Source: Glycera tridactyla (Eukaryota). From it: 64,000 bases of DNA. This document shows, piece after piece, positions 10,126-20,646 of the stretch. The position numbers were made by a program, and so were the translations under genes. The stretch's first letter is position 1; each line of letters starts with the position of its first letter. Where the stretch lies: NCBI GenBank assembly GCA_965644265.1, contig OZ286476.1, positions 4,650,001 through 4,714,000 of the forward strand, in the 5' to 3' direction. The notes beneath the pieces are model-generated. The model was not told the DNA's origin, searched no databases, and saw nothing but the letters and a program-made list of their open reading frames with translations.

Positions 10126-10189
10126 ATGCGGTCCATCCTCGTTGTTCTGATCGCTGTGGCACTTCTTGGTGTCTCCTTTGTTCAAGGAG
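10126..10189 (+). CDS. Exon 1 (signal peptide MRSILVVLIAVALLGVSFVQG) of a secreted-peptide gene, copy 1
   Basis: Basic N-terminus plus hydrophobic core plus VQG cleavage-type end. Phase-1 donor AG|GTAGGA, upstream TATA box, and a conserved paralog at 63440-63503. Confidence 0.8.
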
Positions 10190-10277
10190 GTAGGATTAGT
10201 TTTGTTTTCTTCAATTTGGTGGCAAGGCTTTTGGAGTTGAATGGCATGTATCAGCCCAAAGGATTATGCATCCCATC

Positions 10278-10670
10278 TGTCCCTGATCCATGGGAGCTGG
10301 ATTCTCTGTCTCCAACAGGCATTAGTCACACTCACACAAACCCTGAACATATCGTACCTGCCATGTGTCCCTGATCCATGAGAACTTGATTCTCTGTTTC
10401 CAACAGGCATTAGTCACACTCACACAAACCCTGAACACATTATACATGCCATGTGTCCCTGATCCATAAGAACTTGATTCTCTGTCTCCATCAGGCATTA
10501 GTCACACTCACACAAACCCTGAACACATTATGCATGCCATGTGTCCCTGATCTATGAGAACTCGATTCTCTGTCTCCAACAGGCATTAGTCACACTCACA
10601 CAAACCGTGAACACATCATGCAATGCCATCTGTCCCTGATCTATTTGAGCTGAATTCGCTGTCTCGCCCA
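10278..10670. repeat. 88-bp intronic tandem repeat, 4 copies plus a partial
   Basis: tgtccctgat recurs at 10278, 10366, 10454, 10542 and 10631. Homologous units occur at about 63170-63360 (-). Confidence 0.9.
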
Positions 10671-11369
10671 AGCAACACTCTCATGAACCCGAAACAAATG
10701 AACAGAAAAATGTCAGACAAAAAAAGAGCTCTCTTCAGCCAAGGAGCAATTTCTCTGAACGGAGTACTGAGCTATATTGAGACTTGTTACTTTATAATTG
10801 GATGTCCCTTATGCAACAAATGTGCTATATTGAGATCCCCATATTATGTGAGTGTTTGATTCGAAATACCATCAACCTCTCCATCAATCAATGTCTCTTT
10901 GGGAACAATGTGCAATATCGTCTTTTCAATTGATGTCTCTCTTGGAGTAACAAAATTTATCATCTGATATCGCATGTAGCGTGCATTTAATCGCCGTCTA
11001 CCCTGCACGTCCGTATGCGTGGTATAACCTCGGATGTTATACGACATGTGGTATAACCATCGCCTGGTCACTTGATGCGTATACACCACCGCTGATTGGC
11101 CAGCAGACAATCGAGGTCAAGGGTCAACTGGCAGTGGTGTCACAGGTTCGATTTCCCCAGCGTCACATCCATAGTTAGGAAAAAATACATCGAGAGAAAT
11201 CAATAAAACTGTTCAATCGATGATTCAATTTCTACAAACTAAACACGAAATTGAGTGTAATACCTACTTCTATTCAGGTATCAAATATAAATGATAATTG
11301 ATCGAGAATCCATGGCGAAAGTTTTGAGCGTCTTCAGCAAAGTCGACACATAGTTGATTTACAGGCTGA

Positions 11370-12410
11370 GGTGAGAAACAAGGATCAGAAGTCCTCAATG
11401 GCTGATCTAGTAGAGGATGAGGCCGAGAGACCAGCACACGTCAAAAGGATCCAAACTTTCAGGCGTTTTGCATCAGAGATTTTCGATAAGGATAATGTCA
11501 CAAAAGAGGTCTAGAGAATGGTTGATCTAATTTCACCATTGTCTCCATTGATCTCAAACAGTCTTACCTTCTTAGACAGTCATCTTCAGGAGAGAGTCAG
11601 TAAACAACTGTCAGTAGACATTGATGCTCCATTAGAGGATTTTGTAGCCCGCAAAGACTGGAATGCAAAAGCTTTGAAGAGGGTCTTTAAACCCAATTTC
11701 CCAGTAGTTTATGGCTGCAACAATCGGGTATACAGGATCGGACTCCCGGCTGGTAAATTAGATGATCATCTAGTTACTCCTCTGGAGTTAGATGTTGATT
11801 ATGCTAACTGGGGCAAGGCCTCAAAAGCGGAATTGAAACCTTTTCCAGAGGACGTCATGCTGAAGGATGCATTGAAGATCCTTTCATATGCAGATGTGGC
11901 CTTGGCAGCGGGAATTTGGATGACACATCCTGATGTTGAAGACAATCCTGAGAATGTGAAAAAAGGCTAATTAGCTATGTCTATAGGGTCAAAGGCTGTC
12001 GAGCACGCTACGTTCGCCATTACTGAGATTGCGGCCAGTATGGAGTTGAGCAGGAGGTCCTTAGCACTGAAATCACTAAATGTAGATGATCAGGTGAAGG
12101 CAGAGCTTAGGTCACTACACAGAAGATGATGGACGAAGGAGCAATAATCAAGCTGCCTCCAGATTGCGAACCGGGCTTTTACAGCAACCTGTTCCTGGTG
12201 ACAAAAGCCTCAGGAGGTTTCAGACCTGTCATCAATTTGAAACCACTGAACAGGTTGCTGTACAACCAGTGTTTCAAGTTCTGTGGTAAAAGGCTGTGCT
12301 CCTGGAGGATTGGTCGATCTCTATGTACCTCCAGTATGCCTATTTTCACGTCCCCATTCGTCAGGACCATCAGAAGTTTCTTCGTTCAGTACAAGACTCC
12401 AAGTTGCTCA
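11370..12410 (+). mobile_element. DIRS relic (gag plus start of RT), truncated by a LINE tail
   Basis: Gag ORF 11518-11970 and RT start 12126 (GFYSNLFLVTKASGGFRPVINL; YFHVPIRQDHQKFLR). Near-identical in places to 43290-44370. Confidence 0.85.
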
Positions 12411-13176
12411 CAACCGCTGCCTGAGTACCATGAAAAACTTGGATGGTGTTATTCTGCCACACTTCTCAGACAGGAACTCAGGATGGAGAAATTGAAAACT
12501 ATGTTGAAATCCACAAAGTGATACTTGGCATCTCTACCCCAGAGCTCAGAAATCTCTTCACATTAAAAAATCCCCTTGCCCATATTCCCATCAGATCTGC
12601 AGCTCAGAGAGATTTACTCTTAACTTTCCCACACTACTGTCTTGTTTTCCTCGACTGCAACATTAGATTCAGAGGAGCCTCCCTTCGGAACTCTCTTCCG
12701 ACTGACATCAGAACTTCTCCCACTATCTCGTCTTTCGAACAGGCTTCTTTCCTTTTTCTTAGTGTAATAAGATCCTCTATCACTAAGAAATAATCCAATG
12801 TACAAACGCAATGCACAGGTAGCCGTGAAAAATACGCAGAATGAACAGTGCAGTGCTACTATTTTTATCTGATCTTCTCTTTTTCTTCTCTTCTCTCTTC
12901 TTTCTTCGTCTATTTCTTTCACTCTTCCTATTTTTTTCTCTCTTCCCCTTACTCTTTCTTTCTTTCTTTTTCTCTCTCTATCTTCCTACCTTCCTCCAGA
13001 TCAATTTTTTTTTTATTTAGCTACTCACCTACTGTCACTCGACTTTCTTTCTCTGAATGTTAGTATTACTCTTCCCGGTTTATATGCTACCCATTTGTTT
13101 ATTCTCACGCTAGAACATCATCCCCTGCGGTCACATGTCTTCTGTTCGATGAAGTTTATCTTATCTTATCTTATCT
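12410..13176 (+). mobile_element. L2/CR1-group LINE 3' end
   Basis: RFRGASLRNSLPTDIRTSPTISSF (ORF2 C-terminus), pyrimidine-rich 3' UTR and (TATCT)n tail. The terminal motif gcggtcacatgtcttctgtt resembles that of the 3744-4707 tail. Confidence 0.75.
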
Positions 13177-18372: not shown

Positions 18373-18685
18373 GTAAGTGTGGTCTTACATTTATCTCATC
18401 ATGGACGAGATATTCTTGAAGCTGTTTGTAAAATCACATCAGTCACATCAAAATCGCCTTCAGTAGAAAAAATAGTGAAGTAGAAAAAAACTACTGGGCT
18501 GGCATGAACATGATCCAAATTGGTCTAAATACTCCCACTCATGCAAATAATCAAATGTATCATTTGAATCATCTTCCAGGGTGTCTCCTATTTTTCACAT
18601 TCAAGTATCAGACTGATGTGGTGTGATTCATCATGTGCCTTCCATTAAAATCTGTACCTGCCTTCCCACTACTTTATGCCGGGAT

Positions 18686-18950
18686 TTTAATTCAATTCAA
18701 TTCAATTCAAAAGAACTTTATTGACATCTTATCACTGGAGTGACATTGATACTAATTACAATAAAGTATACTACATAACTTAACTACGGGCACAGAAATA
18801 CAGTTCATGAGTACATGAGCACAGAAATACAGGTCAAGGGTGCATAGTAGGCTATATACAGTCATTATAAAGTCATTGTTGAGCTCCAAAGAATTACTAT
18901 TTACAATTAATAGATGCATACTCGGCCTGCTGCTATTACATATATGCTGT
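18686..18950 (-). mobile_element. Short LINE 3' tail
   Basis: AATAAA followed by a (TTGAA)n tail on the minus strand at about 18688-18722. Confidence 0.45.
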
Positions 18951-18978
18951 GCGATCATTAGGTGACCTGTGAGGTACT

Positions 18979-19164
18979 NNNNNNNNNNNNNNNNNNNNNN
19001 NNNNNNNNNNNNNNNNNNNNNNNNNNNNNNNNNNNNNNNNNNNNNNNNNNNNNNNNNNNNNNNNNNNNNNNNNNNNNNNNNNNNNNNNNNNNNNNNNNNN
19101 NNNNNNNNNNNNNNNNNNNNNNNNNNNNNNNNNNNNNNNNNNNNNNNNNNNNNNNNNNNNNNNN
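18979..19164. other. Assembly gap
   Basis: Run of N. Confidence 1.
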
Positions 19165-20607
19165 GAGGTCGAGGATGGGGTTGGGGTGTGTGGTTTCCCT
19201 ATTTTGCCCTTGTGCCAGCGTCGGAGAGTTGGTGCCTTCTTTTTTTTCAAAACCTAGCAAAGTGAACCTTCCCAGCGCCATTGCAGGCAATTCAGAATCC
19301 ACTAGCACGATGGATCCACTAATCCATCACTTAATCCATCCACTATTCTTGAAGGCTCAACCATAATCGAACACCGACAAACGTCATCCGCCATTTCTTT
19401 ATGCCTTCTGATTTACATCTTGACATATTCTTGCATGTTATATTGGCTGTACTTGTTTCACCATCACGTTATGAATGGATCATTATTCAAAATTCTCTCA
19501 TATCGAGGAATATCCCATCCTCAGACTTGTACACTGAATATGGAAAGATTCCATGTTTAAGTGACATAAAATTCCAGAAAATACAGATCTAAAATAGCCA
19601 TTCGGAGCAAGTATGCCAAAAGCTCCTAAAATCTGCATCCTATCTGCCCTCATGAATTCTCACAGCAGGAGAGATCACTTACAATCTTATGAAGAATTAA
19701 GCGCCCAACATGGGACACATCCAACTACCAGGGTGGCGATCCTGGAGGGTGATGTAGGATTCAGTCATTCAGCCCAGCTCCGATGCGCACTCTCCGGGTC
19801 AGAAGCTTAAAGGGCCAAATTTCAGTGCACAACGTTCATATTCAGTTGATGATTGGAATATGTAAAATTTTCAGCTCCGAATCTTAATTTCTCTAGGAGA
19901 TACGTGGTCAGACATGTTTTACTAAGTTCCTCTAATGAACTAAGCAGCAGGGCCTACTACGCATTTTTCGTGAAATACTCGCTTCGACCCCTGCCCCTCC
20001 CCCGCCGTCGGCCCAAATGAGGGAACAAGTATTCAGGGTCTCAAAAGAAATTCTACGAATTTCACTATTCTATGTTTATGTGATGAATTGGTTTCTTCTG
20101 CAAAGAATGATCCGTGAATTGCTTGGGTTTGCAGAAGAAACTAATTCAGCACATAAGCATGACATTGGAGTTTGACAGGGATGTTTGAATGGGGAATGTG
20201 TTGTTCTATGAAGTGCAACAATTGAGGATATTCCAAATCTATACTTTCCTTTGATAAAGTTAGGATATATTCCAACTACTCACGAACAAACAGAAGGACA
20301 TTTAGTACCTGGACAGCCAATAACATTTTCCTCACTCCTGTGAAATCTGATAGTTCTAAGTGAATTTCATCCATCTGAAATTTCATTTCAAAATTGGTGA
20401 AAATGTTTCCAAATAGGCACCCAGTGAAGGGGGTTTAATGATATATTGATGAGCCTGCTGGAGGTGCCCGCACCCCACATGCCACTGAGTAAACGGGGTC
20501 GTGGCAGCTGCGTCCCTATCTATATGGTATTGTGAATCCACTCTCTCTCATCCGTCTTCCTGCCTAAATATCTCTCTTCAATTCAAATTTTCTTTTTTTC
20601 TATTCAG

Positions 20608-20646
20608 AAAAGTATATGGATCCTTGGGGTAATGTGAAAGAGCACG
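20608..20646 (+). CDS. 39-nt phase-1/phase-1 micro-exon (EKYMDPWGNVKEH)
   Basis: ttttctttttttctattcag| ... |gtaagt, with an open phase-1 frame. Confidence 0.6.

Follow-up and report, generated by a model that had tools for sequence, protein, structure and literature searches.

The window analyzed here, a stretch of 64,000 nucleotides (nt) located at G000:C47:4650001-4714000 in the 2.04-Gb assembly used for all genome-wide searches, carries between 10 and 22 kb a forward-strand gene made of a signal exon followed by very short exons embedded in repeated intron cassettes, as well as an inverted relative close to its end. We found that this gene is real and transcribed, and that its RNA is spliced from exon 1 to a micro-exon of the first cassette and from there to a 36-nt micro-exon. 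Very likely, the locus is one of the transcribed genes of a large family, counting at least 27 loci, that codes for small, secreted, highly charged peptides devoid of cysteine. The gene has the following layout, in window coordinates:

9826-10125, + strand: promoter and 5' untranslated region (UTR), family-conserved (68-83% identity to at least 20 paralogous loci)
10126-10189, + strand: coding part of exon 1, MRSILVVLIAVALLGVSFVQG plus the first base (G) of the next codon (sequence, RNA joints and loose ends)
14559-14589, + strand: remnant of the cassette-1 micro-exon, 39 nt in its RNA form, donor acg/GTAAGT at 14589/14590
16289-16324, + strand: 36-nt micro-exon, phase 1-1, DNPYWRDQKDKR (sequence, and RNA continuation from 14589)
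18331-18372, + strand: predicted 42-nt micro-exon, phase 1-1, VNNRGSQGQKEDRG (from sequence)
18979-19164, no strand: assembly gap, in what would be the intron separating the 42-nt from the 39-nt exon
20608-20646, + strand: predicted 39-nt micro-exon, phase 1-1, EKYMDPWGNVKEH (from sequence)
21859-22265, + strand: candidate last exon, whose G-V-Y-T-stop lies at 21859-21872; a possible 3'UTR follows, and there is an AATAAA near 22244 (from sequence)

Exon 1 opens with an ATG at 10126, behind a TATAAAA box at 10033 and a 5'UTR that is covered by RNA contigs from about 10085, and ends in phase 1 at the donor gag/GTAGGA (10189/10190). Its product consists of MR, a hydrophobic core of 17 residues and VQG, with V at -3 and G at -1, a first-exon signal of the kind that characterizes the micro-exon genes (MEGs) of schistosomes. 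Four homologous intron cassettes follow, around 14.56, 16.29, 18.33 and 20.61 kb, their homology spanning roughly -110 to +380 nt around each exon. Three of them hold clean open exons in phase 1-1, with a pyrimidine-rich acceptor ending in CAG and a G/GTAAGT donor. An initial annotation of this DNA had described a phase-1 signal exon and homologous cassettes, three of which contain stop-free phase 1-1 exons of 36, 42 and 39 nt; we could reproduce these coordinates and readings, and the joined reading proposed for them is correct in silico, exon 1, the three reference micro-exons and the candidate last exon giving 64 amino acids (aa). The gene model has at least five coding exons.

The cassettes are duplicates of one unit, as expected from the earlier idea that the gene grows by cassette duplication. 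The exon of cassette 1 is homologous to the one at 20.6 kb (59% nucleotide identity, with flanks at 72-83%), and a homologue of the 42-nt exon is present in the paralogous locus L032 (ADEQGSQGEREIR). When the 20.5-kb cassette was used as a BLAST query, the 5' part that bears the exon gave matches at this locus and, apart from a weak one on C1, nowhere else. The 3' parts of two cassettes (14818-14964 and 20726-20940) belong to a dispersed repeat, found at more than 30 places across the genome with about 67% identity, which was duplicated along with them. Concerning the candidate last exon, it is unique in the genome and we found no counterpart in the paralogues. A conserved Rbfox-type GCATG enhancer downstream of the micro-exons was also considered and rejected (7 occurrences found against 5 expected).

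The locus includes two assembly gaps, one at 18979-19164, which sits in a putative intron and therefore leaves the reading frame untouched, and one at 21264-21429, ahead of the candidate last exon, so that neither disrupts a reading frame. The regular spacing of the cassettes (1.7, 2.0 and 2.3 kb) is compatible with continuity across the gaps, without proving it.

Splicing was followed in four runs (X1-X4) from two studies, whose contigs were placed on positions 10000-15999 of the window, with 30 letters visible per loose end. In the search for runs, exon 1 alone returned small shares only, and the 8.9-kb gene returned X2 at 12%. Depth is in the hundreds over exon 1 and about 0-5 over most of the intron, and some contigs bear Illumina adapter remnants; from these two features, the runs behave as complementary DNA. 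Joints and loose ends fall in all four exactly at 10189, the predicted exon-1 donor. One contig in each of X2, X3 and X4 joins 10189 to 14559 with eight extra letters (ATAAGTAC) in between, and X1, which comes from the other study, has loose ends that match these at 14559 and 14589. With the 8 extra letters added to the 31 nt of the reference, the transcript has a second exon of 39 nt. This exon is in phase 1-1, translates to DKYYDMYGNVEYH and represents the exon of cassette 1 in intact form. Beyond 14589 the contigs extend for at least 255 nt, a length that fits the candidate last exon without being proof of it, and the loose end at this point is the 36-nt exon (16289), with two differences over 30 nt that both alter an amino acid (DSPYG in the RNA, DNPYW in the reference). 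Among the contigs listed there is one isoform only, and none that lacks an exon.

The proposal of a micro-exon gene starting at exon 1 therefore stands as regards phase-1 splicing into symmetric micro-exons, but in the transcript observed exon 1 is not joined directly to the 36-nt exon, as the exon of cassette 1 intervenes. The initial annotation had taken this cassette, at 14.4 kb, as exon-less; RNA shows that it holds an expressed 39-nt exon, crippled in the reference. The outcome that had been named as fatal to such a gene, an exon 1 that is silent or never spliced to these exons, is the opposite of what RNA shows, since exon 1 is expressed and reaches the 36-nt exon.

In the reference sequence, the donor of cassette 1 is good, but no acceptor AG stands in the right place and the exon is short of 8 coding nt at its 5' end; judged against the 20.6-kb cassette, some 14 nt may have been deleted. 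Use of an upstream AG at 14543 as a substitute acceptor was considered and rejected, as it gives a stop (TAA) in phase 1. The intact 39-nt exon is found nowhere in the assembly, a single two-mismatch match on C32 being attributable to chance (35 and 28 control matches), and for the RNA form of the 36-nt exon this locus is the only place in the genome within three mismatches. One RNA contig covering the locus-specific 5'UTR matches exactly over 44 nt, from 10087 to 10130. Given this exact contig and the lack of any other match for the RNA forms in the assembly, the transcripts come from another allele of this gene or, less likely, from an unassembled twin. The missing acceptor and initial 8 coding nt of cassette 1 look like a loss on the side of the reference haplotype. 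As this exon is symmetric, its skipping is predicted to keep the frame. The missing acceptor would force such skipping in the reference, and the corresponding RNA is not among the contigs listed.

An alternative is that the transcripts originate from an unassembled, nearly identical paralogue, or from another population or species, and that the window copy is a decaying allele with a weak donor and a dead cassette-1 exon. This would account for the fact that all four runs have the intact cassette-1 exon and the identical two changes in the 36-nt exon, while the reference displays GTAGGA instead of GTAAGT, a missing acceptor and two assembly gaps. However, the 44-nt contig matches the 5'UTR of this very locus, 31 nt of the cassette-1 exon are identical between RNA and reference, the assembly contains no second copy, and the loss takes out a whole symmetric exon and so leaves the frame intact. 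We regard this alternative as unlikely.

A search with the 211 nt around exon 1 gave 27 genome matches covering the promoter and signal exon, one of them inverted at the end of the window, and judged by these matches the gene belongs to a family of at least 27 paralogous loci. Some are clustered: four tandem copies lie 9-13 kb apart on C18 (G000:C18:89225974-89257110), and at least seven copies lie within 0.45 Mb on C51 (18.45-18.89 Mb). Common to the 22 copies that were aligned are some 200 nt of promoter, TATA-like box included, then the 5'UTR and signal peptide, and intron 1 over its first ~100 nt. In 20 of them a GTAAG donor follows after 61-76 nt, always 1 mod 3, and the signal exon finishes in phase 1 as does exon 1. 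A profile search placed cassettes beside the signal exon in five other paralogues, and fragments in two more; cassettes are recorded at 7 loci. These alignments bear out the predicted combination of a conserved signal with a hypervariable mature part; besides cassettes and repeats, no conserved coding block is shared among the 22 paralogous stretches of 10 kb.

The inverted copy (59824-63503, - strand) has a promoter and signal exon 91% identical to those of the gene at 10 kb, and different micro-exons:

63440-63503, - strand: signal exon MRTILVVLIAVALLGVSYVQG, phase 1, donor gag/GTAAGT, ATG at 63503 (sequence)
61293-61331, - strand: 39-nt micro-exon EPVMQSGDRRIVS, phase 1-1 (sequence and RNA loose end)
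59824-59881, - strand: predicted 58-nt cassette exon EDPDFWKRLGSFRRQPQID, phase 1 to 2, hence not symmetric

In X2, X4 and part of the X1 consensus, the loose end after the exon-1 donor is the first 30 nt of 61331-61293 (- strand), and the splice from signal exon to micro-exon is proven by RNA in this paralogue too. RNA-proven micro-exons thus number two in the gene at 10 kb and one in its inverted relative. As a terminal exon for the latter we considered an open reading frame (ORF) of 208 aa at 57452-58078 (- strand), which was rejected: it is a (PSDC)n reading of a 12-nt minisatellite (38.6 copies) without supporting evidence. A 52-nt tandem array of 18 copies, in 58777-59726, lies directly downstream of the last exon seen in this paralogue and likewise shows no sign of coding.

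Two further copies may be mentioned. In L039 (positions 454-2375 of G000:C51:31318000-31327999) the signal exon ends in ...ADFGEQ, and RNA joins it to an exon that starts with ATCATGTAC at L039:2345, 1.9 kb downstream. The symmetry of this exon depends on the use of a GC donor (ATG/GCAAGC), which makes it 30 nt long; with the GT donor it measures 25 nt. L033 (G000:C47:2742950-2752949), on the same chromosome and 1.9 Mb away, is a probable pseudogene copy: its signal core has a 3-nt deletion, the usual GT donor is lost, the next GTAAG lying 12 nt further on, and the signal exon is followed by four cassettes, two of which are recent duplicates (94% identical).

Concerning the product, the 160 cassette-encoded residues include no cysteine, are D, E, K or R in 39% of cases, and have a high content of G, Q, N, Y and W. 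Each exon combines acidic with basic residues, and the mature model has a net charge of +1 in the reference or -1 with the cassette-1 exon. Only the 21-aa signal of the protein is conserved, the remainder being short and probably disordered. Pfam searches with two joined models gave sub-threshold matches to the signal peptide only, no protein of 35-112 aa (the size range covered) among 5.8 billion clusters shares three 5-mers with the 64-aa model, and we could not find the signal-peptide strings in the literature. The family thus has no Pfam or protein relative that we could find, consistently with its having been called uncharacterised at the outset. With no such match among these clusters, it is probable that the annotations of this genome and of its relatives lack a highly transcribed family of secreted peptides.

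Of the 11 distinct cassette exons of the family, five (E2, P2, P3, L048a and L049a) contain KR or RR, and the peptides are hydrophilic as well as cysteine-free. This may call to mind precursors of the prohormone or neuropeptide type, from which short signalling peptides would be released at these sites; the family would then not code for defence or material proteins. We found neither repeated peptide copies nor G-K/R-R amidation motifs in the cassette peptides, and a set of at least 27 co-regulated, hypervariable paralogues with allelic exon loss would be unusual for neuropeptides, which are conserved. We hold a prohormone-like role to be rather improbable.

It could also be that the micro-exons merely code for an N-terminal linker and that the transcript continues into exons for conventional domains, in which case this would not be a small-peptide gene and the G-V-Y-T end would be wrong. 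The candidate last exon indeed has no counterpart in paralogues, RNA contigs extend for 255 nt or more past 14589, with 30 letters of this visible, and the 58-nt exon of the inverted paralogue leaves phase 2, so that more coding sequence must follow there. However, the region downstream of 23 kb is filled by ORFs of long interspersed nuclear element (LINE) and Ngaro type, the paralogous stretches share no conserved coding block besides cassettes and repeats, and an extension of at least 255 nt already accommodates three micro-exons and a short terminal exon. A longer, domain-bearing protein appears quite improbable, and a small peptide is the reading that we keep.

The frames of the cassette exons are far from random. 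Ten of the 11 distinct exons are multiples of 3 (P = 1.3e-4), and all ten of these are free of stops in phase 1 (shuffling gives P = 2.7e-4), whereas their other two frames contain stops in 4 and 8 cases. The view that these exons are fortuitous open frames within a repeated unit of intron or transposon, which the presence of a dispersed repeat (more than 30 copies at about 67% identity) in the 3' part of two cassettes might suggest, can be dismissed with near certainty, since frame statistics speak against it, the exon-bearing 5' part adjoins family signal exons bar one weak match on C1, and RNA joints at the exact predicted boundaries refute it for the first three exons of the transcript (exon 1, cassette-1 exon and 36-nt exon) as well as for P2 in the paralogue.

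The exons had been said to differ more than their flanking introns, and this is what we found: averaged over pairs, the exons have an identity of 0.50, compared with 0.63 for the 90 nt upstream and 0.61 for the 90 nt downstream (shuffled baselines 0.46 and 0.52). Between the 18.3-kb and 20.6-kb cassettes, for example, the exon has an identity of 0.47, below the values of its upstream (0.75) and downstream (0.62) flanks. By their translations the micro-exons are nevertheless not mutually unrelated, since some types can be recognised more than once: the exons at 14.5 and 20.6 kb follow xKYxDxxGNVxxH, those at 18.3 kb and in L032 follow xxxxGSQGxxExR, and DPxMQxGxxRR is common to the inverted paralogue and L049.

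Several points weigh against a transcribed gene for a secreted micro-exon peptide at this place. The label "RNA" of the runs is a guess, their RNA nature being deduced from the joints and the depth profile, and in the mapping of 10000-15999 we saw no RNA joint for the 42-nt, 39-nt or last exon. The reference donor of exon 1, GTAGGA, is weaker than the GTAAGT of the family, and the expressed form departs from the reference by 8 nt and an acceptor in cassette 1, by 2 nt in the 36-nt exon and by 1-2 nt in exon 1. Finally, cleavage of the signal peptide was assessed by the -3/-1 rule alone.

The locus and its surroundings are also rich in repeats. Intron 1 starts with an 88-nt tandem repeat (10263-10700, + strand) that is common to the first introns of many paralogues (e.g. 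L032:540-1730), and many RNA contigs hold short look-alikes of 10231-10288 flanked by unrelated sequence, which indicates that related repeats are transcribed elsewhere. Further into the intron lies an element (10957-11237) resembling a short interspersed nuclear element, with a GGTTCGA similar to the B box of transfer RNA genes and 78% identity to copies in introns of L043 and L044. A 123-nt segment at 20943-21065, about 200 nt before the gap at 21264, is 75% identical to its own reverse complement and may represent a hairpin like those of miniature inverted-repeat transposable elements. The LINE- and Ngaro-type ORFs mentioned above crowd the region beyond 23 kb, and nearly 1 kb at 52579-53521 consists of a G-rich simple repeat of GGCA/GACAG type, with a spike in G+C content to 0.54.

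From these data, a mode of operation can be proposed. A TATA promoter, conserved across the family together with the 5'UTR and signal exon, drives abundant transcription, and the signal exon ends in phase 1 exactly at the likely cleavage site, directly after VQG, so that the mature peptide is encoded by the downstream micro-exons of 36-54 nt. Each of these sits in a duplicated cassette providing a long pyrimidine tract with CAG, a G/GTAAGT or G/GTGAGT donor and about 100-400 nt of conserved flank. As nearly every micro-exon is in phase 1-1, gain, loss or duplication of a cassette keeps the frame, and cassettes have been duplicated within and between genes, with one exon lost in a natural allele. 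The flanks may be conserved because very short exons need strong and fixed splice signals, and the exons themselves may be under relaxed or diversifying selection. The products, presumably secreted, would make use of the 42-nt, 39-nt and last exons as well, might be processed at KR/RR sites, and could have a fast-evolving extracellular role, for example in defence, interaction or signalling.

Such a family would be of interest in several respects. Gene predictors miss genes of this type. The conserved cassettes, together with a natural allele deleted for one exon, could be used to study how exons of 36-54 nt are recognised, and the same family to ask whether flanks stay constant while exons are driven to change.

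In schistosomes, MEGs start with a signal peptide and have most of their coding region in very short symmetric exons, whose length is a multiple of 3 (6-81 bp) and between which lie introns of 0.1-5 kb; they give small, secreted and fast-evolving products, and form multigene families enriched in transposon insertions (PMC4350168; bioRxiv 10.1101/2023.06.21.545858). The gene described here is alike in having a signal exon and symmetric micro-exons in long introns: exon sizes are 36, 39, 39, 42, 48 and 54 nt, thus short and symmetric as in MEGs, and introns measure 1.2-4.4 kb (6.1 kb when cassette 1 is skipped), within the range of long MEG introns. It differs in showing no sequence similarity, with no Pfam or protein match and so no sign of common descent, and in having exons of 36-54 nt, 4-5 per gene as far as seen, whereas MEGs have 10-20 exons, mostly of 15 bp. 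Moreover, promoter, 5'UTR, signal exon and intron flanks are conserved here over at least 20 loci, and while exon skipping is a hallmark of MEGs, the contigs listed here contain one isoform. The host is probably an annelid, not a platyhelminth; a search for the erythrocruorin-linker family PF16915 as an annelid marker gave no match here, but gave none in the control genomes either and thus carries no information on this point.

Conotoxin superfamilies have a conserved signal exon ending in a phase-1 intron, conserved introns, and a mature exon with far more substitutions and indels (PMC3862624). The conserved signal and introns and the hypervariable mature part are shared with the present family, but conotoxins are built from 2-3 ordinary exons with cysteine frameworks, in contrast to the symmetric micro-exons, absence of cysteine and at least five coding exons found here. 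In the myticalins, linear antimicrobial peptides of mussels that form a multigenic and taxon-restricted family, the signal is conserved and the linear mature region hypervariable; they have dibasic sites and a phase-1 intron, and vary from one individual to another (PMC5577615). Our family resembles them in being multigenic and in its conserved signal, hypervariable linear mature part, dibasic sites and phase-1 intron. However, myticalins have signal and mature peptide in one exon and are strongly cationic with an anionic C-terminal extension, whereas the peptides described here are encoded exon by exon and are near neutral.

MEGs have been described as limited to platyhelminths or Schistosomatidae (PMC4350168; bioRxiv 10.1101/2023.06.21.545858) and treated as a flatworm peculiarity tied to parasitism (PMC4350168), and in the literature we found no paper tying micro-exon genes to annelids or molluscs. 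What we describe is the architecture of micro-exon genes in an unrelated family, probably outside flatworms. We tentatively suggest, as a possibility that we hold with less than even confidence, that a probable annelid evolved independently a MEG-like system of more than 27 co-regulated genes, in which the mature peptide would derive wholly from phase-1 cassettes, fixed flanks would act as splice scaffolds, diversity would arise by cassette duplication, allelic exon loss (seen once) and possibly regulated skipping, and the role would be in defence or chemical communication. If true, an RNA-supported and sequence-unrelated family in a free-living worm would mean that this gene architecture can arise independently.

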